DNA of 64,000 nt, taken from Octopus sinensis (taxonomy: Eukaryota). Each line of letters begins with the position of its first letter. Positions within the stretch are counted from its first letter, which is position 1. The stretch is from contig NC_043025.1 in the NCBI RefSeq assembly GCF_006345805.1, positions 11,098,001 to 11,162,000 on the forward strand, given 5' to 3'. The notes below the pieces were generated by a model. It was not told the DNA's origin, did no database searches, and was given only the letters and a program-made list of their open reading frames with translations. This document shows positions 25,045 through 62,242 of this stretch, in pieces. The position numbers and the translations under genes are program-made.

Positions 25045-25580
25045 ATATGACGGGCTTCTTTCAGTTTCCGTCTGCCAAATCCACTCACAAGGCTTTGGTC
25101 GGCCCGAGGTTATATTAGAAGACACTTGCGCAAGGTGCCACGCAGTGGGACTGAACCCGGAACCATGTGGTGGTAAACAAGCTACTTACCCCACAGCCCC
25201 TCCTGCGCCTATATATATATATACACACATATATATATATACATATATACAACGGGCTTCTTTCAGTTTCCGTCTGCCAAATCCACTCACAAGGCTTTAG
25301 TTGGCCCGAGGTTATATTAGAAGACACTTGCCCAAGGTGCCCCGCAGTGGGACTGAACACGGAACCATGTGGTTGGTAAGCAAGCGACTTAGCACACAGC
25401 CACTCCTACATATATATATATATGATGGGCTTCTTTCAGTTTCCGTCTGCCAAATCCACTCACAAGGCTTTAGTTGGCCCGAGGTTATATTAGAAGACAC
25501 TTGCCCAAGGTGCCCCGCAGTGGGACTGAACCCGGAACCATGTGGTTGGTAAGCAAGCGACTTAGCACACAGCCACTCCT
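25045..25580 (-). repeat. Three tandem SINE heads, antisense, just upstream of the terminal exon acceptor
   Basis: Reverse complement of the 177-bp family head, repeated three times. Confidence 0.85.
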
Positions 25581-25671
25581 GTGCTTATGCTGTATAATGT
25601 TTATTTTTTTATTATTTTGTGTTCAATTTTATGTTTTTTATGTTGTTGTTTTTTTTTTCTTTTTTGTGCAG

Positions 25672-25836
25672 TTTGAAACCATTCAAAGTGTTTTGGACAT
25701 CTACAGGAAACAGCAGAACTTGAACACGGATCTCCTGAAGCTGTACTTTGATGGCGAGCTCCTGAACACCACGCTGACGCCAGCCGCCTATGGCATCGAA
25801 GACGGCGACTGCCTCGACCTCGTGGTAGAGACCTAG
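25672..25836 (+). CDS. NFATC2IP: Terminal coding exon of the SUMO-like-domain protein: FETIQSVLDIYRKQQNLNTDLLKLYFDGELLNTTLTPAAYGIEDGDCLDLVVET*
   Basis: Long T tract then tgtgcAG|TTT, phase 0; stop TAG 25834-25836. The motif L-Y-F-D-G-E-x-L...T-P-x-x-x-G-I-E-D-G-D-x-L-D is SUMO/Rad60 SLD-type; no C-terminal GG. 40 of 54 codons end in G/C, unlike the AT-rich flanks. Confidence 0.8.
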   Translation, partial: FETIQSVLDIYRKQQNLNTDLLKLYFDGELLNTTLTPAAYGIEDGDCLDLVVET

Positions 25837-26667: not shown

Positions 26668-28011
26668 TTATTCTATGTGTCCCCCTTCTTTTTCAATAAC
26701 TGCCTTCACACTCTCCCTGAAACTTGCACAGGTGTTCCTCAAATATTCGGGAGACAACTTCTCCCATTCTTCTGTAATAGTATCGTTAAGAGAGTCGACA
26801 TTGCTGTGTGATGTTCTATTGGTAGCATGTTCTAAAACGCCCCCAAATAGCATAATCCAGAGGGTTTAGATCTGGGCTAGAAGGCGGCCATAAACATGAT
26901 TCCCAAAAATCGCTAAAGTTGGATTTGCAGAAATCTTGTATTTTTCTGGCTGTGTGAGCTGGAGCACCATCCTGTGTCCATACATAATTACCATCTGTGT
27001 AGTTTGCTTTAAGCCATGGCAATACCTGGTTTCTCAGGGTCTTGTAGTAAGTATTAACATTGATCTTTTCATCAGCTTTGTAGAATTTTATAGGTGAGGG
27101 CGCGTGGCTTAGTGGTTAGGGCATTCGGCTCATGATCGTAAGGTTGTGAGTTCGATTCCCGGCGACGCGTTGTGTCCTTGAGCAAGACACTTTATTTCAC
27201 GTTGCTCCAGTCCACTCAGCTGGCAAAAATGAGTTGTACTTGTATTTCAAAGGGTCAGCTTTGTCACTTTCTGTGTCACGCTGATTATCCCCGAGAACTA
27301 CGTTAAGGGTACACGTGTCTGTGGAATGCTCAGCCATTTGCACGTCAATTTCACAAGCAAGCTGTTCCGTTGATCGTATCAGCTGGGACCCTCGTCGTCG
27401 TAACCGGCGGAGTCTTAAGAGAAGAATTTTATAGGCATTTTCTTTCCATCGGAAGCCATAACTTGTGCAGGATGTTTTGTTTTGAATGTCCCCTTAACCT
27501 CAGCTGTTGATTTGGCAATAAATCTGTCATTTCTGCGGTTCAGAACAGCATCGACAGTGAAGATCTTTTCACCTGAAAAGATTGTTAGAATGGAGGACTT
27601 TTCCTTGAACCATATAATAATTTTCTTGCACCTCTCCAATCTCTTTTCCTTCATAGCTGTTGTCAACAAATGTTTTGGTGTTCTTGTGTAAGATTTTAAC
27701 CTCAAATCATATTTTACTGCATTTCTAATGGTCTTCTTGTCTACCTCAAGTTCAATTGCCATTTTTCTCATGGATTTGGTTGGATCCTCTAGGATTTTGG
27801 ATTTGAGAGCTTTAATGAAGGCTTTGGTACGTTTTTTGCTGATTCCTCCACTTCCAGACTTCCTTGTAATAGTTTTGCTCATAGTCATTCTATTCTTTAC
27901 ATTATAAACAGTCTTTATGGACACTCCAACTATCCTTGAAATCTCCAGTGGTGTGACGACTGCATTCAGCAAATCACACACTCTTTGACGTTTGCTTTCC
28001 TGATTACTCAT
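26668..28011 (-). pseudogene. maT (DD37D) transposase pseudogene
   Basis: HTH-like N-terminus. First catalytic motif reads FSGEK (D to G), then QDGAPAH and WPPSSPDLNPLDY with 37 residues between the 2nd and 3rd D. Interrupted by a SINE at KMPIKF|YKADEK, with a frameshift near the C-terminus. Confidence 0.92.
27095..27422 (+). mobile_element. Full-length tRNA-derived CORE-like SINE with 13-bp TSD
   Basis: TSD AGAATTTTATAGG at 27082-27094 and 27423-27435; head ggcgcgtggcttagtggttagggc...gagttcgattccc; CORE-like gtgtccttgagcaagacact...; tail shared with 60352-60690. Confidence 0.9.
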
Positions 28012-28174
28012 ATGGGAAAAAGTTTCTGAAAAGGTAAGGATAATAGTGTTAGGTATGAGTATGACATCAGTATATGCTAGGTTTCAAAACAATTGACTCA
28101 GTGCCTCCTGAGAAAAAGCAACTTAACGGTCATTGTAAATTTTACTTCTTCAGCCTGTATGTATATATATATAT

Positions 28175-28215
<41 letters not shown>

Positions 28216-28224
28216 ATATGTATA

Positions 28225-28262
<38 letters not shown>

Positions 28263-28491
28263 CTTTATTTTAAGCAGCAGAAAATTCAACAAAATCTGTT
28301 ACTCTGAGTTTCTCGTTGCCGTTCATCAGACAGTTTTTTCTAGCAAAAACTGTCTGATGAACGGCAACGAGAAACTCAGAGTAACAGATTTTGTTGAATT
28401 TTCTGCTGCTTAAAATAAAGCATATTACTCTACCACTGGTATTTGAGTACTCTTTTTTCCACCTTGTTTCACATTTATGTGTTTACTCCAG
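28263..28491. mobile_element. Palindromic element (perfect 76-bp stem, 6-nt loop) plus a 71-bp unpaired tail between (TA)n tracts; probably derived from a Penelope-like terminal repeat
   Basis: 28263-28338 is the exact reverse complement of 28345-28420; contains the hammerhead core. The PLE assignment is inference. Confidence 0.65.
28345..28392 (+). ncRNA. Minimal type I hammerhead ribozyme motif (mirror copy on the minus strand in the left arm, ~28291-28338)
   Basis: CUGAUGA 28354-28360; stem II ACG-GCAA-CGA (10.1/11.1 A-A mismatch); GAAA 28371-28374; palindromic stem III ACUC-A-GAGU; GUA cleavage triplet 28381-28383; stem I CUGU/ACAG plus AAAA/UUUU. Confidence 0.7.
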
Positions 28492-28512
<21 letters not shown>

Positions 28513-28522
<10 letters not shown>

Positions 28523-28789
28523 TTAGAGACAACACCACTATTATGCAAATCAAACAAAGAAAGACTTAATCCAATACATAAAAAATTTTATATAAATTAA
28601 ATATATTATATTATATTTAATTTCATTTATATAAAAAATTTTATGTATTGGATTAAGTCTTTCTTTGTTTGATTTGCATAATAGTGGTTTTGTCTCTAAT
28701 TAATATTATATTATATTTTACTATAAAATTGGATTCAATCCTAAATCTGATTTTTCCCTGTAAATTTGGATTTATTCCCTAATATTTAT

Positions 28790-29867: not shown

Positions 29868-31098
29868 TTGAAATATAGGTACAACAGAAACAGGAAGTAA
29901 GAGTGAGAGAAAGTTGTGGTGAAAGAGTACAGCAGGGATCACCACCATCCCCTGCCGGAGCCTCGTGGAGCTTTTTAGGTTTTTTCGCTCAATAAACACT
30001 CACAACGCCCGGTCTGGGAATCGAAACCGCGAGTCCGCTGCCCTAACCACTGGGCCATTGCGCCTCTCCAAGGCGAATACAGGTCTGTGTACCCTTAACG
30101 TAGTTCTCGGGGATATTCAGCGTGACACAGAGAGTGACAAGGCCGGCCCTTTGAAATACAGGCACAACAGAAACAGGAAGGAAGAGTGAGAGAGAAAGTT
30201 GTGAAAGAGTACAGCAGGGATCACCACCATCCCCTGCCGGAGCCTCGTGGAGCTTTTTAGGTGTTTTCGCTCAATAAACACTCAGAACGCCTGGTCTGGG
30301 AATCGAAACCACGAGTCCGCTGCCCTAACCACTGGGCCATTGCGCCTCTCCAAGGCGAATACAGGTCTGTGTACCCTTAACGTAGTTCTCGGGGATATTC
30401 AGCGTGACACAGAGAGTGACAAGGCCGGCCCTTTGAAATACAGGCACAACAGAAACAGGAAGGAAGAGTGAGAGAAAGTTGTGAAAGAGTACAGCAGGGA
30501 TCACCACCATCCCCTGCCGGAGCCTCGTGGAGCTTTTTAGGTGTTTTCGCTCAATAAACACTCAGAACGCCTGGTCTGGGAATCGAAACCGCGAGTCCGC
30601 TGCCCTAACCACTGGGCCATTGCGCCTCTCCAAGGCGAATACAGGTCTGTGTACCCTTAACGTAGTTCTCGGGGATATTCAGCGTGACACAGAGAGTGAC
30701 AAGGCCGGCCCTTTGAAATACAGGCACAACAGAAACAGGAAGAAAGAGTGAGAGAAAGTTGTGAAAGAGTACAGCAGGGATCACCACCATCCCCTGCCGG
30801 AGCCTCGTGGAGCTTTTTAGGTGTTTTCGCTCAATAAACACTCACAACGCCCGGTCTGGGAATCGAAACTGCGATCCACTGCCCTAACCACTGGGCCATT
30901 GCGCCTCCACAGGTACAACAGAAACAGGAGAAGAGTGAGAGAGTTGTGGTGAAAAATAGCAGCATCAGGGATCCACCACCATCCCCTGCCGGAGCCTCGT
31001 GAGCTTTTAGGTGTTTTCGCTCAATAAACACTCACAACGCCTGGTCTGGGAATCGAAACCGCGAGTCCGCTGCCCTAACCACTGGGCCATTGCGCCTC
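29868..31098 (-). repeat. Tandem array of a tRNA-derived SINE (~280-bp unit, ~4.5 copies)
   Basis: Anchors at 29965, 30247, 30527, 30807; minus-strand head ggcgcaatggcccagtggttagggc...ggtttcgattccc. Confidence 0.9.
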
Positions 31099-43205: not shown

Positions 43206-46200
43206 TGCATCCTTCAAAACTTCCATGCTTCCTGAGATTCGCCAACACTACACCTGATCTCCTCCCCTCCATACTCACGCTGAAGCATGGAACAAACTGC
43301 CGGCATCAGTTGTTAGTTGTCGGAGCACTGCATCCTTCAAAACTTCAAAACTTCCATGCTTTCTGAGATTCGCCAACACTACACCTGATTTTCTTCCCTC
43401 CATACACATGCTGAAGCATGGAACAAACTGCTGGCATCAGTTGTTAGTTGTCGGAGCACTGCATCCTTCAAAACTTCCATGCTTCCTGAGATTCGCCAAC
43501 ACTACACCTGATCTTCTCCCCTCCATACACATGCTGAAGCATGGAACAAACTGCCGGCATCAGTTGTTAGTTGTCAGAGCACTGCATCCTTCAAAACTTC
43601 CATGCTTCCTGAGATTCGCCAACACTACACCTGATCTTCTCCCCTCCATACACATGCTGAAGCATGGAACAAACTGCCGGCATCAGTTGTTAGTTGTCAG
43701 AGCACTGCATCCTTCAAAACTTCCATGCTTCCTGAGATTCGCCAACACTACACCTGATCTCCTCCCCTCCATAACACGCTGAAGCATGGAACAAACTGCG
43801 GCATCAGTTTTTAGTTGTCGGAGCACTGCATCCTTCAAAACTTCAAAACTTCCATGCTTTCTGAGATTCGCCAACCTACCACCTGATTTCCTCCCCCATA
43901 CACATGCTGAAGCATGGACAAAACTGCCGGCATCAGTTGTTAGATGTCGGAGCACTGCATCCTTCAAAACTTCAAAACGTCCATGCTTTGAGAGATTCGC
44001 CAACAACACTGATCTCCTCCCCACCTGTTTTTCCCCTCCATACTCACGCTGAAGCATGGAACAAACTGCCGGCATCAGTTGTTAGTTGTCGGAGCACTGC
44101 ATCCTTCAAAACTTCAAAACTTCCATGCTTTCTGAGATTCGCCAACACTACACTGATTTTCTCCCCTCCATACACATGCTGAAGCATGGAACAAACTGCT
44201 GGCATCAGTTGTTAGTTGTCGGAGCACTGCATCCTTCAAAACTTCCATGCTTCCTGAGATTCGCAACACTACACCTGATCTCCCCTCCATACACACGCTG
44301 AAGCATGGAACAAACTGCCGGCATCAGTGTTAGTTGTCGAGCACTGCATCCTTCAAAACTTCCATGCTTCCTGAGATTCGCCAACACTACACCTGAACTT
44401 CTCCCCTCCATACACACGTGAAGCATGGAACAAACTGCTGGCATCAGTTGTTAGTTGTCGGAGCACTGCATCCTTCAAAACTTCCATGCTTCCTGAGATT
44501 CGCCAACACTACACCTGATCTTCTCCCCTCCATACACACGCTGAAGCATGGAACAAACTGCTGGCATCAGTTGTTAGTTGTTGGAGCACTGCATCCTTCA
44601 AAACTTCCATGCTTCCTGAGATTCGCCAACACTACACCTGATCTTCTCCCCTCCATACACACGCTGAAGCATGGAACAAACTGCCGGCATCAGTTGTTGG
44701 TTGTCAGAGCACTGCATCCTTCAAAACTTCCATGCTTCCTGAGATTCGCCAACACTACACCTGATATCTCCCCTCCATACACATGCTGAAGCATGGAACA
44801 AACTGCCGGCATCAGTGTTAGTTGTCAGAGCACTGCATCCTCCAAAACTCCATGCTTCCTGAGATTCGCCAACACTACACCTGATCTCCTCCCCTCCATA
44901 CTCACGCTGAAGCATGGAACAAACTGCCGGCATCAGTTGTTAGTTGTCGGAGCACTGCATCCTTCAAAACTTCAAAACTTCCATGCTTTCTGAGATTCGC
45001 CAACACTACACCTGATTTCCTCCCCTCCATACACATGCTGAAGCATGGAACAAACTGCCGGCATCAGTTGTTAGTTGTCGGAGCACTGCATCCTTCAAAA
45101 CTTCAAAACTTCCATGCTTCCTGAGATTCGCCAACACTACACCTGATCTCCTCCCCTCCATACTCACGCTGAAGCATGGAACAAACTGCCGGCATCAGTT
45201 GTTAGTTGTCAGAGCACTGCATCCTTCAAAACTTCCATGCTTCCTGAGAGATTTGCCAACACTACACCTGATCTTCTCCCCTCCATACACACGCTGAAGC
45301 ATGGAACAAACTGCTGGCATCGGTTGTTAGTTGTCGGAGCACTGCATCCTTCAAAACTTCCATGCTTCCTGAGAGATTCGCCAACACTACACCGATCTTC
45401 TCTCTCCCCCTCCATACACACGCTGAAGCATGGAACAAACTGCCGGCATCAGTTGTTAGTTGTCGGAGCACTGCATCCTTCAAACCTTCCATGCTTCCTG
45501 AGATTCGCCAACACTACACCTGATCTCCTCCCCTCCATACACACGCGAAGCATGGAACAAACTGCCGGCATCAGTTGTTAGTTGTCGGAGCACTGCATCC
45601 TTCAAAACTTCCATGCTTCTGAGATTCGCCAACACTACACCTGATCTTCTCCCCTCCATACACACGCTGAAGCATGGAACAAACTGCCGGCATCAGTTGT
45701 TAGTTGTCGAGCACTGCATCCTTCAAAACTTCCATGCTTCCTGAGATTCGCCAACACTACACCTGATCTTCTCCCCTCCATACACACGCTGAGCATGGAA
45801 CAAACTGCCGGCATCAGTTGTTAGTTGTCGAGCACTGCATCCTTCAAAACTTCCATGCTTCCTGAGATTCGCCAACACTACCACCTGATTTCTCCCACTC
45901 CCCTCCATACACACGCTGAAGCATGAACAAACTGCCGGCATCAGTTGTTAGTTGTGTCAGAGCACTGCATCCTTCAAAACTTCCATGCTTCCTGAGATTC
46001 GCCAACACTACACCTGATTTTCTCCCCTCCATACAGACGCTGAAGCATGGAACAAACTGCCGGCATCAGTTGTTAGTTGCCGGAGCACTGCATCCTTCAA
46101 AACTTCCATGCTTCCTGAGATTCGCCAACACTACACCTGATTTTCTCCCCTCCATACACACGCTGAAGCATGGAACAAACTGCCGGCATCAGTTGTTAGT

Positions 46201-49200
46201 TGTCGGAGCACTGCATCCTTCAAAACTTCCATACTTCCTGAGATTCGCCAACACTACACCTGATTTTCTCCCCTCCATACACACGCTGAAGCATGGAACA
46301 AACTGCCGGCATCAGTTGTTAGTTGTCGGAGCACTGCATCCTTCAAAACTTCCATGCTTCCTGAGATTCGCCAACACTACACCTGATCTTCTCCCCTCCA
46401 TACACATGCTGAAGCATGGAACAAACTGCCGGCATCAGTTGTTAGTTGTCAGAGCACTGCATCCTTCAAAACTTCCATGCTTCCTGAGATTCGCCAACAC
46501 TACACCTGATCTCCTCCCCTCCATACTCACGCTGAAGCATGGAACAAACTGCCGGCATCAGTTGTTAGTTGTCGGAGCACTGCATCCTTCAAAACTTCAA
46601 AACTTCCATGCTTTCTGAGATTCGCCAACACTACACCTGATTTCCTCCCCTCCATACACATGCTGAAGCATGGAACAAACTGCCGGCATCAGTTGTTAGT
46701 TGTCGGAGCACTGCATCCTTCAAAACTTCAAAACTTCCATGCTTCCTGAGATTCGCCAACACTACACCTGATCTCCTCCCCTCCATACTCACGCTGAAGC
46801 ATGGAACAAACTGCCGGCATCAGTTGTTAGTTGTCGGAGCACTGCATCCTTCAAAACTTCAAAACTTCCATGCTTTCTGAGATTCGCCAACACTACACCG
46901 GATTTTCTTCCCTCCATACACATGCTGAAGCATGGAACAAACTGCCGGCATCAGTTGTTAGTTGTCGGAGCACTGCATCCTTCAAAACTTCCATGCTTCC
47001 TGAGATTCGCCAACACTACACCTGCTCTTCTCCACTCCATACACTGCTGAAGCATGGAACAAACTGCCGGCATCAGTTGTTAGTTGTCGGAGCACCTGCA
47101 TCCTTCAAGACTTCCATGCTTCCTGAATTCGCCAACCCTACACCTGATCTCTCCCCTCCAAACACACGCTGAGCATGGAACAAACTGCCGGCATCAGTTG
47201 TTGGTTGTCGGAGCACTGATCCTCCTTCAAAACTTCCATGCTTTCTGAGATTCGCCAACCTACACCTGATTTTCTCCCCTCCATACACACGCTGAAGCAT
47301 GGAACAAACTGCCGGCATCAGTTGTTAGTTGTCGGAGCACTGCATCCTTCAAAACTTCCATGCTTCCTGAGATTCGCCAACACTACACCTGATCTTCTCC
47401 CCTCCATACACACGCTGAAGCATGGAACAAACTGCCGGCATCAGTTGTTAGTTGTCGGAGCACTGCATCCTTGAAAACTTCCATGCTTCCTGAGATCGCC
47501 AAACTACACCTGATCTTCTCCACTCCATACACACGCTGAAGCATGAACAAACTGCCGGCATCAGTTGTTAGTTGTCGGAGCACTGCATCCTTCAAAACTT
47601 CCATGCTTCCTGAGATCGCCAACACTACACCTGATTTTCTCCCCTCCATACCACGCTGAAGCATGGAACAAACAAACTGCCGGCATCAGTTGTTAGTTGT
47701 CGGAGCACTGCATCCTTCAAAACTTCCATGCTTCCTGAGATTCGCCAACACTACACCTGATCTTCTCCTCCCCTCCATACACACGCTGAAGCATGGAACA
47801 AACTGCCGGCATCAGTTGTTAGTTGTCGGAGCACTGCATCCTTCAAAACTTCCATGCTTCCTGAGATTCGCCAACACTACACCTGATCTTCTCTCCCCTC
47901 CATACACACGCTGAAGCATGGAACAAACTGCCGGCATCAGTTGTTAGTTGTCGGAGCACTGCATCCTTCAAAACTTCCATGCTTCCTGAGATTCGCCAAC
48001 ACTACACCTGATCTTCTCCCCTCCATACACACGCTGAAGCATGGAACAAACTGCCGGCATCAGTTGTTAGTTGTCGGAGCACTGCATCCTTCAAAACTTC
48101 AAAACTTCCATGCTTTCTGAGATTCGCAACACTACAACTGATCTTCTCCTCCCCTCCATACACACGCTGAAGCATGGAACAAACTGCCGGCATCATTGTT
48201 AGTTGTCGGAGCACTGCATCCTTCAAAACTTCCATGCTTCCTGAGATTCGCCAACACTACACCTGATCTTCTCCCCTCCATACACACGCTGAAGCATGGA
48301 ACAAACTGCCGCATCAGTTGTTAGTTGTCGGAGCACTGCATCCTTCAAAACTTCCATGCTTCCTGAGATTCGCCAACACTACACCTGATCTTCTCCCCTC
48401 CATACACACGCTGAAGCATGGAACAAACTGCCGGCATCAGTTGTTAGTTGTCGGAGCACTGCATATCCTTCAAAACTTCCATGCTTCCTGAGATTCGCCA
48501 ACACTACACCTGATTTTCTCCCCTCCATACACACGCTGAAGCATGGAACAAACTGCCGGCATCAGTTGTTAGTTGTCGGAGCACTGCATCCTTCAAAACT
48601 TCCATGCTTCCTGAGATTCGCCAACACTACACCTGATCTTCTCTCCCCTCCATACACACGCTGAAGCATGGAACAAACTGCCGGCATCAGTTGTTAGTTG
48701 TCGGAGCACTGCATCCTTCAAAACTTCCATTCCTTCTAGAGATTCGCCAACACTACACCTGCTTCTCCCCCTCCATACACACGCTGAAGCATGGAACAAA
48801 CTGCCGGCATCAGTTGTTAGTTGTCGGAGCACTGCATCCTTCAAAACTTCCATGCTTCCTGAGATTCGCCAACACTACACCTGATCTTCTCCCCTCCATA
48901 CACACGCTGAAGCATGGAACAAACTGCCGGCATCAGTTGTTAGTTGTCGGAGCACTGCATCCTTCAAAACTTCCATGCTTCCTGAGATTTGCCAACACTA
49001 CACCTGATCTTCTCCCCTCCATACACACGCTGAAGCATGGAACAAACTGCCGGCATCAGTTGTTAGTTGTCGGAGCACTGCATCCTTCAAAACTTCCATG
49101 CTTCCTGAGATTCGCCAACACTACACCTGATCTTCTCCCCTCCATACACACGCTGAAGCATGGAACAAACTGCCGGCATCAGTTGTTAGTTGTCGGAGCA

Positions 49201-52200
49201 CTGCATCCTTCAAAACTTCCATGCTTCCTGAGATTCGCCAACACTACACCTGATCTTCTCCCCTCCATACACACGCTGAAGCATGGAACAACTGCCGGCA
49301 TCAGTTGTTAGTTGTCGGAGCACTGCATCCTTCAAAACTTCCATGCTTCCTGAGATTCGCCAACACTACACCTGATCTTCTCCCCTCCATAACACACGCT
49401 GAAGCATGGAACAAACTGCCGGCATCAGTTGTTAGTTGTCGGAGCACTGCATCCTTCAAAACTTCCATGCTTTCTGAGATTCGCCAACACTACACCTGAT
49501 CTTCTCCCCTCCATACACACACGCTGAAGCATGGAACAAACTGCCGGCATCAGTTGTTAGTTGTCGGAGCACTGCATCCTTCAAAACTTCCATGCTTCCT
49601 GAGATTCGCCAACACTACACCATGATCTTCTCCTCCCCTCCATACACACGCTGAAGCATGGAACAAACTGCCGGCATCAGTTGTTAGTGTCGGAGCACTG
49701 CATCCTTCAAAACTTCCATGCTTCCTGAGATTCGCCAACACACTACACTAATTTTCTCCCCTCCATACACACGCTGAAGCATGGAACAACTGCCGGCATC
49801 AGTTGTTAGTTGTCGGAGCACTGCATCCTTCAAAACTTCCATGCTTCCTGAGATTCGCCAACACTAACCTGATTTTCTCCCTCCCCTCCATACACACTGA
49901 AGCATGGAACAAACTGCCGGCATCAGTTGTTAGTTGTCGGAGCACTGCATCCTTCAAAACTTCCATGCTTCCTGAGATTCGCCAACACTACACCTGATTT
50001 TCTCCCCTCCATACACACGCTGAAGCATGGAACAAACTGCCGGCATCAGTTGTTAGTTGTCGGAGCACTGCATCCTTCAAAACTTCCATGCTTCCTGAGA
50101 TTCGCCAACACTACACCTGATTTTCTCCCCTCCATACACACGCTGAAGCATGGAACAAACTGCCGGCATCAGTTGTTAGTTGTCGGAGCACTGCATCCTT
50201 CAAAACTTCCATGCTTCCTGAGATTCGCCAACACTACACCTGATCTCCTCCCCTCCATACACACGCTGAAGCATGGAACAAACTGCCGGCATCAGTTGTT
50301 AGTTGTCGGAGCACTGCATCCTTCAAAACTTCCATGCTTTCTGAGATTCGCCAACACTACACCTGATTTTCTCCCCTCCATACACACGCTGAAGCATGGA
50401 ACAAACTGCCGGCATCAGTTGTTAGTTGTCGGAGCACTGCACCTTCAAAACTTCCATGCTTCTGAGATTCGCCACACACTACACCTGATTTTCTCCCCTC
50501 CATACACAGCTGAAGCATGGAACAAACACTGCCGGCATCAGTTGTTAGTTGTCGGAGCACTGCATCCTTCAAAACTTCCATGCTTCCTGAGATTCGCCAA
50601 CACTACACTACTGATCTTCTCTCCCCTCCATACACAGCTGAAGCATGGAACAAACTGCCGGCATCAGTTGTTAGTTGTCGGAGCACTGCATCCTTCAAAA
50701 CTTCCATGCTTCCTGAATTCGCCAACACTACACCTGATCTTCTCCCCTCCATACACACGCTGAAGCAGGAACAAAACTGCCGGCATCAGTTGTTAGTGTG
50801 GGGAGCACTGCATCCTTCAAAACTTCCATGCTTCCTGAGATTCGCCAACACTACACCTGATCTTCTCCCCCCATACACACGCTGAAGCATGGAACAAACT
50901 GCCGCAATCAGTTTGTTAGTTGTCGAGCAGCACTGCATCCTTCAAAACTTCCATGCTTCCTGAGATTCGCCAACACTACACCTGATCTTCTCACCTGACT
51001 TCCCCTCCATACACAATGCTGAAGCATGGAACAAACTGCCGGCATCATTGTTAGTTGTCGGAGCACTGCATCCTCCTTCAAAACTTCCAAACTTCCAGCT
51101 TTCGGAAGTCGCCAACACTACAACTGATCTTCTCTCCCCTCTCCCCTCCATACACACTGAAGCTGGAACAAACTGCCGGCATCAGTTTTAGTTTGTCGGA
51201 GCACTGCATCCTTCAAAACTTCCATGCTTCCTGAGATTCGCCAACTACTACACCTGATCTTCTCCCCTCCATACACACGAAGCATGGAACAAACTGCCAA
51301 ACTGCCGGCATCAGTTGTTAGTTGTCGGAGCAACATCATTTCAAAACTTCCATGCTTCCTGAGATTCGCCAACACTACACCTGATCTTCTCCCCTCCATA
51401 CACACGCTGAAGCATGGAACAAACTGCCGGCATCAGTTGTTAGTTGTCGGAGCACTGCATCCTTCAAAACTTCCATGCTTCAAGAGATTCGCCAACACTA
51501 CACCTGATCTTCTCCCCTCCATACACACGCTGAAGCATGGAACAAAACTGCCGGCATCAGTTTGTAGTTGTCGGAGCACTGCATCCTTCAAAACTTCCAT
51601 GCTTCCTGAGATTCGCCAACACTACACCTGATCTTCTCCCTCCATACACACGCTGAAGCATGGAACAAACTGCCGGCATCAGTTGTTAGTTGTCGGAGCA
51701 CTGCATCCTTCAAAACTTCCATGCTTCCTGAGATTTGCCAACACTACACCTGATCTTCTCCCCTCCATACACACGCTGAAGCATGGAACAAACTGCCGGC
51801 ATCAGTTGTTAGTTGTCGGAGCACTGCATCCTTCAAAACTTCCATGCTTCCTGAGAGATTTGCCAACACTACACCTGATCTTCTCCCCTCCATACACACG
51901 CTGAAGCATGGAACAAACTGCTGGCATCGGTTGTTAGTTGTCGGAGCACTGCATCCTTCAAAACTTCCATGCTTCCTGAGAGATTCGCCAACACTACACC
52001 TGATCTTCTCCTCCCCTCCATACACACGCTGAAGCATGGAACAAACTGCCGGCATCAGTTGTTAGTTGTCGGAGCACTGCATCCTTCAAAACTTCCATGC
52101 TTCCTGAGATTCGCCAACACTACACCTGATCTCCTCCCCTCCATACACACGCTGAAGCATGGAACAAACTGCCGGCATCAGTTGTTAGTTGTCGGAGCAC

Positions 52201-55200
52201 TGCATCCTTCAAAACTTCCATGCTTCCTGAGATTCGCCAACACTACACCTGATCTTCTCCCCTCCATACACACGCTGAAGCATGGAACAAACTGCCGGCA
52301 TCAGTTGTTAGTTGTCGGAGCACTGCATCTCTCCTTGAAAACTTCCATGCTTCCTGAGATTCGCCAACACTACACCTGATTTTCTCCCCCCATACACACG
52401 CTGAAGCATGGAACAAACTGCCGGCATCAGTTGTTAGTTGTCGGAGCACTGCATCCTTCAAAACTTCCATGCTTCCTGAGATTCGCCAACACTACACCAA
52501 CACTACCATGCTTCTCCCCCTCCATACACACGCTGGCATGGAACAAACTGCTGCGGACATCAGTTGTTAGTTGTCGGAGCACTGCATCCTTCAAAACTTC
52601 CATGCTTCCTGAGATCGCCAACACTACACCTGATCTTCTCCCCTCCATACACACGCTGAAGCATGGAACAAACTGCCGGCATCAGTTGTTAGTGTCGGAG
52701 CACTGCATCCTTCAAAACTTCCATGCTTCCTGAGATTCGCCAACACTACACCTGATTTTCTCCCCTCCATACACACGCTGAAGCATGGAACAAACTGCCG
52801 GCATCAGTTGTTTTTGTCGGAGCACTGCATCCTTCAAAACTTCCATGCTCCTGAGATTCGCCAACACTACACCTGATCTCCTCCCCTCCATACACACGCT
52901 GAAGCATGGAACAAACTTGCCGGCATCAGTTGTTAGTTTTCGGAGCACTGCATCCTTCAAAACTTCCATGCTTTCTGAGATTCGCCACACTACACCTGAT
53001 CTTCTCCCCTCCATACACACGCTGAAGCATGGAACAAACTGCCTGGCATCAGTGTTAGTTGTCGGAGCACTGCATCCTTGAAAACTTCCATGCTTCCTGA
53101 GATTCGCCAACACTACACCTGATTTTCTCCCCTCCATACACACGCTGAAGCATGGAACAACTGCCGGCATCAGTGTTAGTTAGTCGAGCACTGCATCCTT
53201 AAAACTTCCATGCTTCCTGAGATTCGCCAACACTACACCTGATTTCCTCCCCTCCATACACACGCTGAAGCATGAACAAACTGCCGGCATCAGTGTTAGT
53301 TGTCGGAGCACTGCATCCTTCAAAACTTCCATGCTTCCTGAGATTCGCCAACACTACACCTGATCTCCTCCTCCCCTCCATACACACACGCTGAAGCATG
53401 GAACAAACTGCCGATCATCAGTTGTTAGTTTTCGGAGCACTGCATCCTTCAAAACTTCCATGCTTCTGAGATATCGCCAACACTACACCTGATCTTCTCC
53501 CCTCCATACACACACGCTGAAGCATGGAACAACTGCCGGCATCAGTTGTTAGTTGTCGGAGCACTGCATCCTTCAAAACTTCATGCTGCTCCTGAGATTC
53601 GCCAACACTACACACCTGATCTTCTCCCCTCCATACACACGCTGAAGCATGGAACAAACACCAGGCATCTGTTGTTAGTTGTCGGAGCACTGCATCCTTC
53701 AAAACTTCATGCTTCCGAGATTCACCAACACTACAACACTGATCTTCTCCCCCCCTCCATACACATGCTGAAGCATGGAACAAACTGCCGGCCGCATCAG
53801 TTGTTAGTTTTCGGAGCACGCATCCTTCAAAACTTCCATGCTTCCTGAGATTCGCCAACACTACACCTGATTCTTCTCCCTCCATACACACGCTGAAGCA
53901 TGGAACAAACTACCGGCATCAGTTGTTAGTTGTCGGAGCACTGCATCCTTCAAAACTTCCATGCTTCCTGAGATTCGCCAACACTACACCTGATCTTCTC
54001 CCTCCATACACACGCTGAAGCATGGAACAAACTGCCGGCATCAGTGTTAGTTGTCGGAGCACTGCATCCTTCAAAAACTCCATGCTTCCTGAGATTCGCC
54101 AACACTACACCTGATCTTCTCCCCTCCATACACACGCTGAAGCATGGAACAAACTGCCGGCATCAGTTGTTAGTTGTCGGAGCACTGCATCCTTCAAAAC
54201 TTCCATGCTTCCTGAGATTCGCCAACACTACACCTGATCTTCTCCCCTCCATACTCACGCTGAAGCATGGAACAAACTGCCGGCATCAGTTGTTAGTTGT
54301 CGGAGCACTGCATCCTTCAAAACTTCCATGCTTCCTGAGATTCGCCAACACTACACCTGATCTTCTCCCCTCCATACTCACGCTGAAGCATGGAACAAAC
54401 TGCCGGCATCAGTTGTTAGTTGTCGGAGCACTGCATCCTTCAAAACTTCCATGCTTCCTGAGATTCGCCAACACTACACCTGATTTTCTCCCCTGCATAC
54501 ACAAGCTGAAGCATGGAACAAACTGCCGGCATCAGTTGTTAGTTGTCGGAGCACTGCATCCTTCAAAACTTCCATGCTTCCTGAGATTCGCCAACACTAC
54601 ACCTGATTTTCTCCCCTGCATACACAAGCTGAAGCATGGAACAAACTGCCGGCATCAGTTGTTAGTTGTCGGAGCACTGCATCCTTCAAAACTTCAAAAC
54701 TTCCATGCTTTCTGAGATTCGCCAACACTACACCTGATCTTCTCCCCTCCATACACATGCTGAAGCATGGAACAAACTGCCGGCATCAGTTGTTAGTTGT
54801 CGGAGCACTGCATCCTTCAAAACTTCAAAACTTCCATGCTTTCTGAGATTCGCCAACACTACACCTGATCTTCTCCCCTCCATACACATGCTGAAGCATG
54901 GAACAAACTGCCGGCATCAGTTGTTAGTTGTCGGAGCACTGCATCCTTCAAAACTTCAAAACTTCCATGCTTTCTGAGATTCGCCAACACTACACCTGAT
55001 CTTCTCCCCTCCATACACACACTGAAGCATGGAACAAACTGCCGGCATCAGTTGTTGGTTGTTGGAGCACTGCATCCTTCAAAACTTCCATGCTTCCTGA
55101 GATTCGCCAACACTACACCTGATCTTCTTCCCTCCATACACACGCTGAAGCATGGAACAAACTGCCGGCATTAGTTGTTAGTTGTCGGAGCACTGCATCC

Positions 55201-55640
55201 TTCAAAACTTCCATGCTTCCTGAGATTCGCCAACACTACACCTGATCTTCTCCCCTCCATACACACGCTGAAGCATGGAACAAACTGCCGGCATCAGTTG
55301 TTAGTTGTCGGAGCACTGCATCCTTCAAAACTTCCATGCTTTCTGAGATTCGCCAACACTACACCTGATCTTCTCCCCTCCATACACACGCTGAAGCATG
55401 GAACAAACTGCCGGCATCAGTTGTTAGTTGTCGGAGCACTGCATCCTTCAAAACTTCCATGCTTTCTGAGATTCGCCAACACTACACCTGATCTTCTCCC
55501 CTCCATACACACGCTGAAGCATGGAACAAACTGCCGGCATCAGTTGTTAGTTGTCGGAGCACTGCATCCTTCAAAACTTCCATGCTTCCTGAGAGATTCG
55601 CCAACACTACACCTGATCTTCTCCTCCCCTCCATACACAC
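43205..55640 (+). repeat. 123-bp satellite (~100 copies; some 131-bp variants) derived from the end of CR1 ORF2
   Basis: Unit encodes AEAWNKLPASVVSCRSTASFKTSMLPEIRQHYT* plus ~20 nt of UTR; 131-bp variants carry an 8-bp duplication (cttcaaaa). Confidence 0.93.
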
Positions 55641-60223: not shown

Positions 60224-60351
60224 GGACTCACGCCATTAGCCACAATCGAAACCGCGTTCTTACGACCGCGAGACTGCTGCCCTAACCACTGGGCCATTGC
60301 GCCTCCACTAGTTGTTGCTGTTGTTCTTGTTGTCATCTCTGATATTATTGT

Positions 60352-60690
60352 CGTAGGATCGCGGTTTCGATTCCCAGACCGGGCGTTGTGAGTGTTTATT
60401 GAGCGAAAACACCTAAAAAGCTCCACGAGGCTCCGGCAGGGGATGGTGGTGATCCCTGCTGTACTCTTTCACCGCAACTTTCTCTCACTCTTCTTTCCTG
60501 TTTCTGTTGTGCCTGTATTTCAAAGGGCCGGCCTTGTCACTCTCTGTGTCACGCTGAACATCCCCGAGAACTACGTTAAGGGTACACGTGTCTGTGGAGT
60601 GCTCAGCCACTTACACGTTAATTTCACGAGCAGGCTGTTCCGTTGATTTGGTTCAACCGGAACCCTCGTCGTTGTAACCGACGGAGTGCT
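60352..60690 (+). mobile_element. tRNA-SINE (280-family) lacking its A box; an inverted head fragment lies at 60243-60308
   Basis: Body and tail match the 29868-31098 array; the tail also matches 27095-27422. Confidence 0.85.
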
Positions 60691-61427: not shown

Positions 61428-62024
61428 TTGGCCCTGCTTTCAAGGACACCTTCATCTCTGTTCATTTACTCTTTTATTCATTTGACTGTGGCCATGCTGG
61501 AGCACTGCCTTTAGTCAAGCAAATCGACCCCAGGACTTTTTCTTTCGAAGCCTAGTACTTATTCTATCAGTCTCTTTTTGCCGAACCACTAAGTTACGGG
61601 GACGTAAACACACCAGCATCGGTTGTCAAACGATGTTGGGGGGACAAACACAGACACATAAACATATACATACACATATATATATATATATATACACATA
61701 TAAATATGTATGTATATATATATATACTTTATTTAAAAGCAGCAGAAATTCAACAAAACCTGTTACGCGGAGTTTTACGTTCACGTTCGTCGGAGAGTTT
61801 TTGTTAGAATAGAACCGATATGCCAATTCTATCAAGACTTCATGGAGCTTTAGGTGTTTTGCTCAAAAAACCCTCACAATGCCCACTCTGGGAATCGAAA
61901 CCGCGATCCTACGACCGCGATCCTACGACCACGAATCCGCTGCTCTAACCACTGGGCCATTGCACCTCCACAAACCCCCACCCCCAACACATGTATATAT
62001 ACATACGACAGGTTTACTCTTACT

Positions 62025-62242
62025 CTTTTACTCTTTTAATTGTTTCAGTCATTTGACTGCGGCCATGCTGGAGCACCGCCTTTAGTCGAGCAAATCGACC
62101 CCAGGACTTATTCTTTGTAAGCCCAGTACTTATTCTATCGGTCTCTTATGCCGAACCGCTAAGTGACGGGGACGTAAACACACCAGCATCGGTTGTCAAG
62201 CAATGCTAGGGGGACAAACACAGACACACAAACACATACACA

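Follow-up and report, generated by a model that had tools for sequence, protein, structure and literature searches.

A hammerhead-shaped motif in both arms of an octopus palindrome: a probable relic of retroelement insertion

In the genome of Octopus sinensis, a short palindrome carries in each of its arms a sequence shaped like a type I hammerhead ribozyme. It lies in a stretch of 64,000 nucleotides (nt) of DNA (assembly GCF_006345805.1, contig NC_043025.1, positions 11,098,001 to 11,162,000), which we call the window and which is a repeat-rich segment with arrays resembling short interspersed nuclear elements (SINEs), many microsatellites, and a 12.4-kb satellite. An initial annotation had proposed a self-masking hammerhead in a unit related to Penelope-like elements (PLEs) or retrozymes, and the question is whether the motif is such a ribozyme, a remnant of one, or a chance resemblance. 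We consider it probable that the motif is a degenerate descendant of octopod hammerheads of the PLE or retrozyme type, lying in an insertion relic that would be inactive as it stands. This reading draws on the base rates of such motifs, the compactness of this one, its extended helix I, a 3′ end fixed at (TA)n, and the head-to-head pairing of two truncated copies.

A repeat search returned the palindrome as two arms of 84 nt, 28258–28341 and 28342–28425, that are 98 per cent complementary and have no spacer between them (168 bp in all). Direct reading gave a perfect pair of 76-nt arms around a 6-nt centre. The perfect 76-bp inverted repeat described in the initial annotation is confirmed, and the right-arm sequence quoted there is exact; the range assigned to it, 28263–28491, holds both arms and also 71 nt of right flank that are not palindromic. 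We use the name module X for the 3′-terminal module of a mobile element that each arm carries. The features of the locus are as follows.

28162–28262: microsatellite (TA)n(TG)n(TA)n; the left arm follows directly, its outer (3′) end first
28263–28338, minus strand: left arm, an inverted, 5′-truncated copy of module X, 76 nt
28339–28344: centre of the palindrome, TCTAGC, similar to TCTAAC at the equivalent spot in a second copy of module X (copy 2, below)
28345–28420, plus strand: right arm, a direct, 5′-truncated copy of module X, ending in ...CTGCTGCTTAAAATAAAG and followed by CATAT
28421–28491: non-palindromic right flank, CATAT and 66 nt of unique sequence
28345–28392, plus strand: hammerhead-shaped motif, made up of the helix I 5′ strand (28345–28353), CUGAUGA (28354–28360), helix II with a GCAA loop (28361–28370), GAA (28371–28373), helix III ACUCAGAGU (28374–28382), H17 (A28383, with the predicted cut 3′ of it), and the helix I 3′ strand (28384–28392)
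28384–28420, plus strand: 3′ tail past the predicted cleavage site, 37 nt, with AATAAA one base from its end
28291–28338, minus strand: mirror-image hammerhead-shaped motif, with its box at 28323–28329 and H17 at 28300

The motif of the right arm reads AAAAACUGU-CUGAUGA-ACGGCAACGA-GAA-ACUCAGAGU-A-ACAGAUUUU and includes the whole conserved core: C3, U4, G5, A6, N7, G8, and A9 in the box (28354–28360), G12, A13, A14, and the A15.1–U16.1 pair in GAA-A (28371–28374) and U28382, and A28383 as H17. The full core in type I topology that had been claimed for it is present, although the type I order of the three helices (I open, II and III closed) is satisfied at a minimal level only. Helix I consists of 4 bp, one mismatch, and then four A-U pairs (eight of nine pairs). 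Helix II, ACG-GCAA-CGA, has only 2 bp (C-G and G-C) below its GCAA loop and above an A.A mismatch, and this mismatch, already suspected as a weakness, is a real defect. Helix III, ACUC-A-GAGU, would form 3 bp with a 3-nt loop in a monomer or 4+4 bp in a dimer. Positions 15.2–16.2 and loop 3 are palindromic, as CUC-A-GAG is its own complement save for the central A (A.A in the dimer).

To estimate how often chance would produce such a motif, we used a descriptor written exactly at the candidate's looseness. Its only matches in the window are the two arms, and the 38-nt core string itself occurs solely at 28350–28387 (plus) and 28296–28333 (minus), with 0 expected in shuffles. The same descriptor matched six times in 90 Mb of random sequence (first-order Markov, window composition), or about 0.009 times per 64-kb window. 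All six chance matches have minimum-length stems and long loops, and none of the six is compact like the candidate. The motif is unlikely to occur by chance in any given window; at the same rate, chance alone would supply several hundred instances in a genome of a few Gb.

Type I hammerheads are abundant in related octopod DNA. We took 244 kb of DNA around relatives of the transposase that neighbours the palindrome, consisting of 148 kb from Octopus bimaculoides (GCA_001194135.2) and 96 kb from a relative (ENA assembly ERZ22157276). Here the descriptor found four motifs far better than the candidate, and model-based and relaxed searches added two. This makes six real or decayed hammerheads per 244 kb, about one per 40 kb, which is roughly a hundredfold over chance. 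Pair counts in the seed alignment of these hammerheads are partly circular, the seeds having been picked by a descriptor that demands pairing; non-circular support comes from the excess over chance, stems longer than the thresholds, compensatory differences between copies, and a tandem unit. In the literature searched, we found no paper describing type I hammerheads of octopuses.

Two of the six (L012a and L007) are copies of one unit of about 351 bp in O. bimaculoides (GCA_001194135.2; L012:11004–11395 and L007:11926–12235). This unit lies in microsatellite DNA, with (TA)n on both sides in L012. Helix I shows a compensatory change between the two copies (CGUACG/CGUACG versus CGAACG/CGUUCG), and helix III (CUCGAG versus UCCGGA) is a perfect palindrome in each. 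Another two (L008:14662–14712 and L009:15322–15372, minus strand) have in common a solo element of about 100 nt that ends about 38 nt past the cleavage site, and differ in helix II (G.U versus A-U); the L008 element appears to interrupt a transposase-like reading frame. The others are L012b (L012:12437–12487, minus strand), with helix III AUAUGCAUAU, and L009b (L009:10943–10981), which has a G10.1–C11.1 pair, helix III ACGCGU, and one core mutation. The candidate is like L012a in its A at 10.1, its A17, and its string GAAACUC(A)GAGUA (versus GAAACUCGAGUA). The distance from cleavage site to element end is 37 nt in the candidate versus about 38 nt in L008 and L009.

A BLAST search of the window with one arm identified a diverged relative of module X, 83 per cent identical over 84 nt. 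This second copy and the sequence fused to it are:

61727–61840, minus strand: copy 2 of module X, non-palindromic, about 113 nt, 83 per cent identical to the arms
61841–61975, minus strand: head and body of a tRNA-like SINE, joined to copy 2 on its upstream side and holding a T6 run

Copy 2 terminates in ...AAATAAAG / ...CTGCTGCTTTTAAATAAAG, directly against a (TA)n tract, and the 3′ end of the left arm (...AAAATAAAG, minus strand) points left into the (TA)n tract beside the palindrome, so that both copies of X stop at the same base directly against (TA)n. Just 4.5 per cent of the window is as close as 30 nt to a (TA)≥6 tract, so these two independent junctions represent a real association. 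The resemblance between TCTAGC at the palindrome centre and TCTAAC in copy 2 suggests that the right copy runs through the centre and is at least 82 nt long. The inner ends of the three instances of X thus differ (76, at least 82, and about 113 nt) and the outer end is fixed, a combination that is the signature of 5′ truncation in target-primed reverse transcription. X looks like the 3′ end of a retroelement transcribed by RNA polymerase II, since AATAAA stands one base from its end, and the 37-nt tail is the best-conserved part between the two copies. To the right, (TA)n resumes at 28492–28515, after the right flank, for whose sequence no relatives were found. An assembly artefact (a fold-back chimera) was judged unlikely, given that the palindrome is internal, that its arms are 84 nt long, and that an arm has an independent relative 33 kb away.

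Upstream of copy 2, about 150 nt are common to an octopus SINE, after which the sequence switches to module X; the SINE copies aligned were those at 29868–31098 and 60244–60428 in the window and those in L013 and L012 of O. bimaculoides. We rejected the idea that the arm is simply the 3′ end of this common SINE, which shares only its first 150 nt or so with copy 2. The pairing of SINE head and X is probably a chimera or an adjacency. A working SINE is improbable because the T-runs in the head and in X would stop RNA polymerase III (Pol III). Reconstruction of an empty site for copy 2 was ruled out, as its flanks are two separate copies of an abundant repeat of about 200 nt. This repeat (TTTCAGTCATTTGACTGCGGCCATGCTGGAGCACCGCC...GGGGGGACAAACACAGACAC) occurs at 61472–61726, at 62031–62228, and in about fifteen other places; every copy has a (CA)n/(TA)n microsatellite tail at its end, and copy 2 sits in one such tail.

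Further copies of X were sought in several ways. Scans with 21-mers of metagenome, viral, and prokaryotic genome collections gave chance matches of 21–23 nt that did not extend, or none. Further copies were equally absent from protein-word searches, which used the open reading frame (ORF) across the palindrome and a six-frame composite made from copy 2, and from nhmmer, BLAST, and fuzzy matching over the 244 kb of octopod DNA. A palindromic copy other than this one was not found in the 308 kb of octopod sequence covered. Family X is represented here by two independent copies only, and two copies cannot root a family.

The two copies differ at thirteen positions, ten of which fall within the 39-nt hammerhead span. 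In copy 2 the box reads CCGACGA (61787–61793), UAAA replaces GAAA, helix III is CUCCGCG, and helix I has lost one pair, so that helices I and III are broken; helix II has 3 bp, retaining an A-U pair at 10.1/11.1 where the arms have A.A. From the sequences, an ancestor with ACG-NNAA-CGU-GAAAC and one change per lineage would explain both copies. At two of the differing positions a CpG of copy 2 corresponds to a TpG of copy 1, and this pair of changes converts CCGACGA to CUGAUGA. The same box (U4 to C, with C at N7) is found at L007:11932–11938, and the sister copies of the two CCGACGA elements read CTGATGA and CTGAAGA. CCGACGA may be the master state, with CpG deamination turning it into the canonical box, or it may have arisen more than once by T-to-C change; CpG tallies for rooting L007 against L012 are symmetric and uninformative. 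We also dropped the argument that X never held a ribozyme given that the hammerhead span diverges more than the tail, as L012a and L007 show the same pattern.

Taken together, these features are consistent with the following scenario. Module X would be the 3′-terminal module of a retroelement, its predicted cleavage site lying 37 nt before the 3′ end. In full-length elements or tandem sense arrays, ribozymes of this type would dimerize through the palindromic helix III and cut multimeric transcripts. At a self-complementary (TA)n target, both nicked strands could prime on the element's 3′ end, yielding two truncated cDNAs joined head-to-head, and the palindrome would then be two 5′-truncated copies of X (76 nt and at least 82 nt) with their 3′ ends pointing outward. 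Snap-back synthesis or a DNA-level hairpin event could lead to the same product.

Predicted folding bears on whether the motif could act in its present place. For one 48-nt arm, the hammerhead fold is predicted at −0.3 kcal/mol with a probability of about 2.5e-5, and the best fold, at −5.1 kcal/mol, joins UCUGA in the box to UCAGA in helix III. For a pair of sense arms, the predicted minimum-energy dimer is a domain-swapped double hammerhead (−15.2 kcal/mol). The 168-nt read-through RNA is predicted to form one long hairpin at −129.5 kcal/mol. These predictions agree with the initial annotation in that read-through RNA would be a single hairpin and that cleavage would need a single-arm transcript or, given the negligible monomer fold, a dimer in trans. 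No second sense copy lies near the palindrome; copy 2, which lacks the core, lies at a distance of 33 kb. With a 2-bp helix II over an A.A mismatch, an unpopulated monomer fold, no sense copy nearby, and a hairpin of about 80 bp, the motif here would be a dead by-product. Masking, which had been put forward as a property of the element, is better read as a side effect of insertion geometry.

The hairpin also has consequences for annotation. Rfam, run on the whole window, on the locus, and on one arm, returned nothing but sub-threshold matches to microRNA (miRNA) precursors, at 28281–28402 (e.g. MIR2606 at 67.8 bits and mir-980 at 44.9 bits against a cut-off of 47). We rejected a miRNA precursor, these matches being generic ones that arise from the perfect hairpin alone; such a hairpin is likely to be misannotated as a miRNA.

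Several results weigh against descent from a PLE or retrozyme hammerhead. In the only other copy of the family that was found, U4 and G12 are missing and helices I and III are broken, so the family comparison suggested in the initial annotation came out unfavourably; on sequence grounds, copy 2 taken alone argues against conservation of a ribozyme in family X. The differences in the box also run in the direction expected if CpG deamination had created it. Helix II of the candidate is shorter than in the six real octopod examples (4–5 bp) and resembles that of the chance hits, and the monomer hammerhead fold is negligible. Outside the core, no sequence homology was found between X and the real hammerhead elements or their flanks. 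RT (reverse transcriptase) and GIY-YIG domains, which linked ORFs might have carried, are absent from the ORFs between 23.5 and 33 kb of the window and from its other candidate ORFs, and no such ORF was found near the O. bimaculoides hammerheads in L007 and L012.

The Rfam covariance model Hammerhead_1 (RF00163) did not match the candidate at its gathering score, nor at E ≤ 10 when one 58-nt arm was scanned by itself. Little weight attaches to this, since the control L012a was also missed at E ≤ 10, and L008 reached just 20.2 bits against a gathering score of 34. We built two models of our own, R1 from four and R2 from six independent octopod hammerheads, both small and biased toward their seeds. 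The candidate scored 7.9 bits with R1 and 9.8 bits with R2, which is background at the scale of the window (for R2, an E of about 3 window-wide and ranks 11–12 of 37 hits). Seeds scored 46–58 bits, L007, which R1 had not seen, 32 bits, and copy 2 2.2 bits. The candidate's low score stems from real defects, as helix II goes uncredited and helix III needs deletions.

Other features of the window were recorded alongside the palindrome. A truncated Tc1/mariner copy (27415–28150, minus strand) has a 198-amino-acid ORF with HTH_Tnp_Tc3_2-like hits and about 92 per cent DNA identity to copies on O. bimaculoides chromosomes; the best relatives of its transposase fragment (27415–28011) are O. bimaculoides proteins. 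It ends at about 28150–28170, just before the microsatellite that precedes the palindrome, and is unrelated to the latter. A second, unrelated palindrome (28511–28711) lies 90 bp to the right of the first, with 100-nt arms that are 93 per cent complementary and a 1-nt spacer. It too lies between (TA)n tracts, and about 80 nt of unique sequence come after it; it contains no hammerhead box, and no relatives of it turned up in the window or in the 244 kb from octopods. Two different palindromes within one microsatellite region suggest a local hotspot of insertion or rearrangement.

Farther off, the C-terminal fifty residues of an ORF at 25474–25836 (plus strand) match the Rad60-SLD/ubiquitin family (E = 1.6e-10), and this ORF is probably the last exon of a gene with a SUMO-like domain, about 2.4 kb upstream of the palindrome. 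A tandem array at 29868–31098 (280-bp period, 3.7 copies at 97 per cent, then a 190-bp variant) has a complete tRNA-derived SINE as its building block, so that here a SINE has become a minisatellite; the same SINE is also tandem in O. bimaculoides L013 (2475 and 2776). The satellite at 43206–55640 spans 12.4 kb, with about 100 copies of a 123-bp unit at 92 per cent identity and a GC skew of −0.32.

It is rather unlikely, in our estimation, that the motif is a chance look-alike. Under that explanation, X would be an ordinary 3′ tail of LINE or SINE type (long or short interspersed nuclear element) with a microsatellite tail, which never coded for a ribozyme, and the palindrome an unrelated inverted duplication. 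Mutation, in part CpG-to-TpG decay of CCGACGA, would have given copy 1 its CUGAUGA...GAAA...UA and its short helices. The coreless copy 2, with CpGs exactly where the box of copy 1 has TpGs, fits such a history, as do the minimum-length helix II, the background model scores, the window ORFs without PLE domains, and the (CA)n/(TA)n tails in which SINE-like repeats of the window often end. Set against these are the expectation of about 0.009 per window, lower still for a compact motif (0/6), compared with about one real hammerhead-derived motif per 40 kb in related DNA; the extension of helix I to eight of nine pairs; the coincidence of the motif with a head-to-head inverted pair at (TA)n; and the identity of the copy 2 box to that of L007, which is clearly hammerhead-derived. 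We rate as very unlikely a foldback element or miniature inverted-repeat transposable element (MITE). On that view a small DNA transposon entered a TA site, the arms are its terminal inverted repeats, and the resemblance to a hammerhead is incidental. A perfect palindrome with almost no spacer, TA-rich surroundings with a Tc1/mariner copy next to it, and an unrelated palindrome 90 bp away that also lies between (TA)n tracts are what one might expect of such an element. Yet the palindrome is flanked by TA on the left and CA on the right, with no target-site duplication, and copy 2 is single-ended, has a different inner breakpoint, and runs into unrelated sequence. Moreover, the termini (CTTTATTT...) are unlike the ends of the adjacent mariner, which stops at about 28150–28170, and an AATAAA that stops one base short of the terminus is more in keeping with the 3′ end of a transcript.

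The notion of a self-regulated working switch, in which the palindrome is maintained and the hammerhead is masked in read-through RNA and freed in single-arm or trans form, is one we hardly credit. Its attractions are an intact core in both arms, the identity of the arms, and the double hammerhead predicted for the dimer. Against it stand the monomer fold probability and the crippled helix II, together with the lack of an identified promoter or partner copy and of a second palindromic copy in the 308 kb, and the arrangement is a known type of PLE insertion by-product (PMC8557442). A bolder reading makes X the hammerhead-bearing 3′ end of a (TA)n-targeting octopus retroelement family, one that tRNA-like SINE heads can capture (as in copy 2) to form a SINE/retrozyme hybrid. 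CCGACGA, present in copy 2 and independently in the O. bimaculoides copy L007, whose helices are kept by compensatory change, would then be an alternative or 'silenced' master state from which two C-to-U/T changes give CUGAUGA. This is quite improbable; were it true, it would imply an on/off switch for a ribozyme driven by mutation or editing, and palindromic insertions would supply long perfect double-stranded RNA in an animal that edits its RNA heavily.

If the motif does descend from PLE or retrozyme hammerheads, it provides an octopus case of the known association of type I hammerheads with these elements, and head-to-head truncated copies at (TA)n would automatically mask a ribozyme in a perfect hairpin. 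The locus is then a fairly ordinary by-product of retroelement insertion and by itself opens no new question. Palindromes of this kind should be labeled retroelement debris, neither miRNA precursors nor functional ribozymes. The leads that emerged alongside are more noteworthy: the density of hammerheads in octopod DNA, the retrozyme-like unit of about 351 bp in (TA)n, and the CCGACGA box that recurs in hammerhead-type elements unrelated to each other.

Known systems share parts of this arrangement. The schistosome elements Sm-alpha and Sj-alpha, associated with the names of Ferbeyre et al. (1998) and Laha et al. (2000), are reportedly SINE-like and carry hammerheads. Copy 2 recalls them in combining a tRNA-like, Pol III-type head with a hammerhead-type box. 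It differs in that its core is not intact, its T-runs would stop Pol III, and its junction looks like a chimera rather than an established family. The dimeric hammerheads of satellite 2 in newts and salamanders (cited in PMC7229834) likewise have a helix III too weak to let a monomer act, and it is extended between two copies. Their copies, however, are repeated in tandem in the sense direction and have loop–loop contacts and a helix II of 4 bp that is intact, unlike the inverted locus with its crippled helix II.

Animal non-LTR (long terminal repeat) retrozymes (PMC7229834, Cervera and de la Peña 2020; preprint 10.64898/2026.07.22.740005, Li et al. 2026) are similarly short, AT-rich, and non-autonomous and carry a type I hammerhead, and the O. 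bimaculoides unit of about 351 bp (L012, L007), with a hammerhead similar to the candidate, appears retrozyme-like. The weak base of helix II has a precedent in the U.U of axolotl HHR_Amex2 (PMC7229834; 10.64898/2026.07.22.740005). Retrozymes, however, are tandem sense units of 170–400 bp with one type I hammerhead each, whereas the locus is an inverted pair of 76–82-nt fragments with no sense dimer or tandem copy and no sequence homology to the O. bimaculoides unit.

Further parallels are with PLEs, and the initial proposal of a PLE- or retrozyme-like unit stands in part. Their minimal hammerheads have a highly conserved G10.1–C11.1 pair, an unpaired nucleotide between A9 and 10.1, a helix II of 6–8 bp, and palindromic positions 15.2–16.2 and loop 3; they form consensus families whose core is conserved and whose helices show compensatory changes, and they lie in the terminal repeat of elements coding for RT and a GIY-YIG endonuclease (PMC4209133, Cervera and de la Peña 2014). 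The candidate departs from them in lacking G10.1–C11.1 (A.A in the arms, A-U in copy 2) and the bulge after A9 and in having a helix II of 2–3 bp; reading a 5′-side bulge into its helix II would need a matching extra A before G12. There is also no linked RT/GIY-YIG ORF or pLTR (pseudo long terminal repeat) at the candidate, the second of the two copies obtained for its family lacks the core, and it is no tandem retrozyme. In favour of the proposal are the (TA)n setting, the inverted 5′-truncated copies, and the similar octopod hammerheads. Like the candidate, the PLE hammerheads are of type I topology with a full core, have a helix I of 4–5 bp with no defined loop 1, and possess a short, near-palindromic helix III that implies action as a dimer. 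PLE hammerheads are also paired on opposite strands (PMC4209133), and PLE insertions have (TA)n targets, inverted 5′-truncated copies, and hammerheads near the 3′ end (PMC8557442, Craig et al. 2021). The locus matches them in the position of its motif near the 3′ end, its opposite-strand neighbour, its head-to-head 5′-truncated copies, and its insertion at (TA)n.

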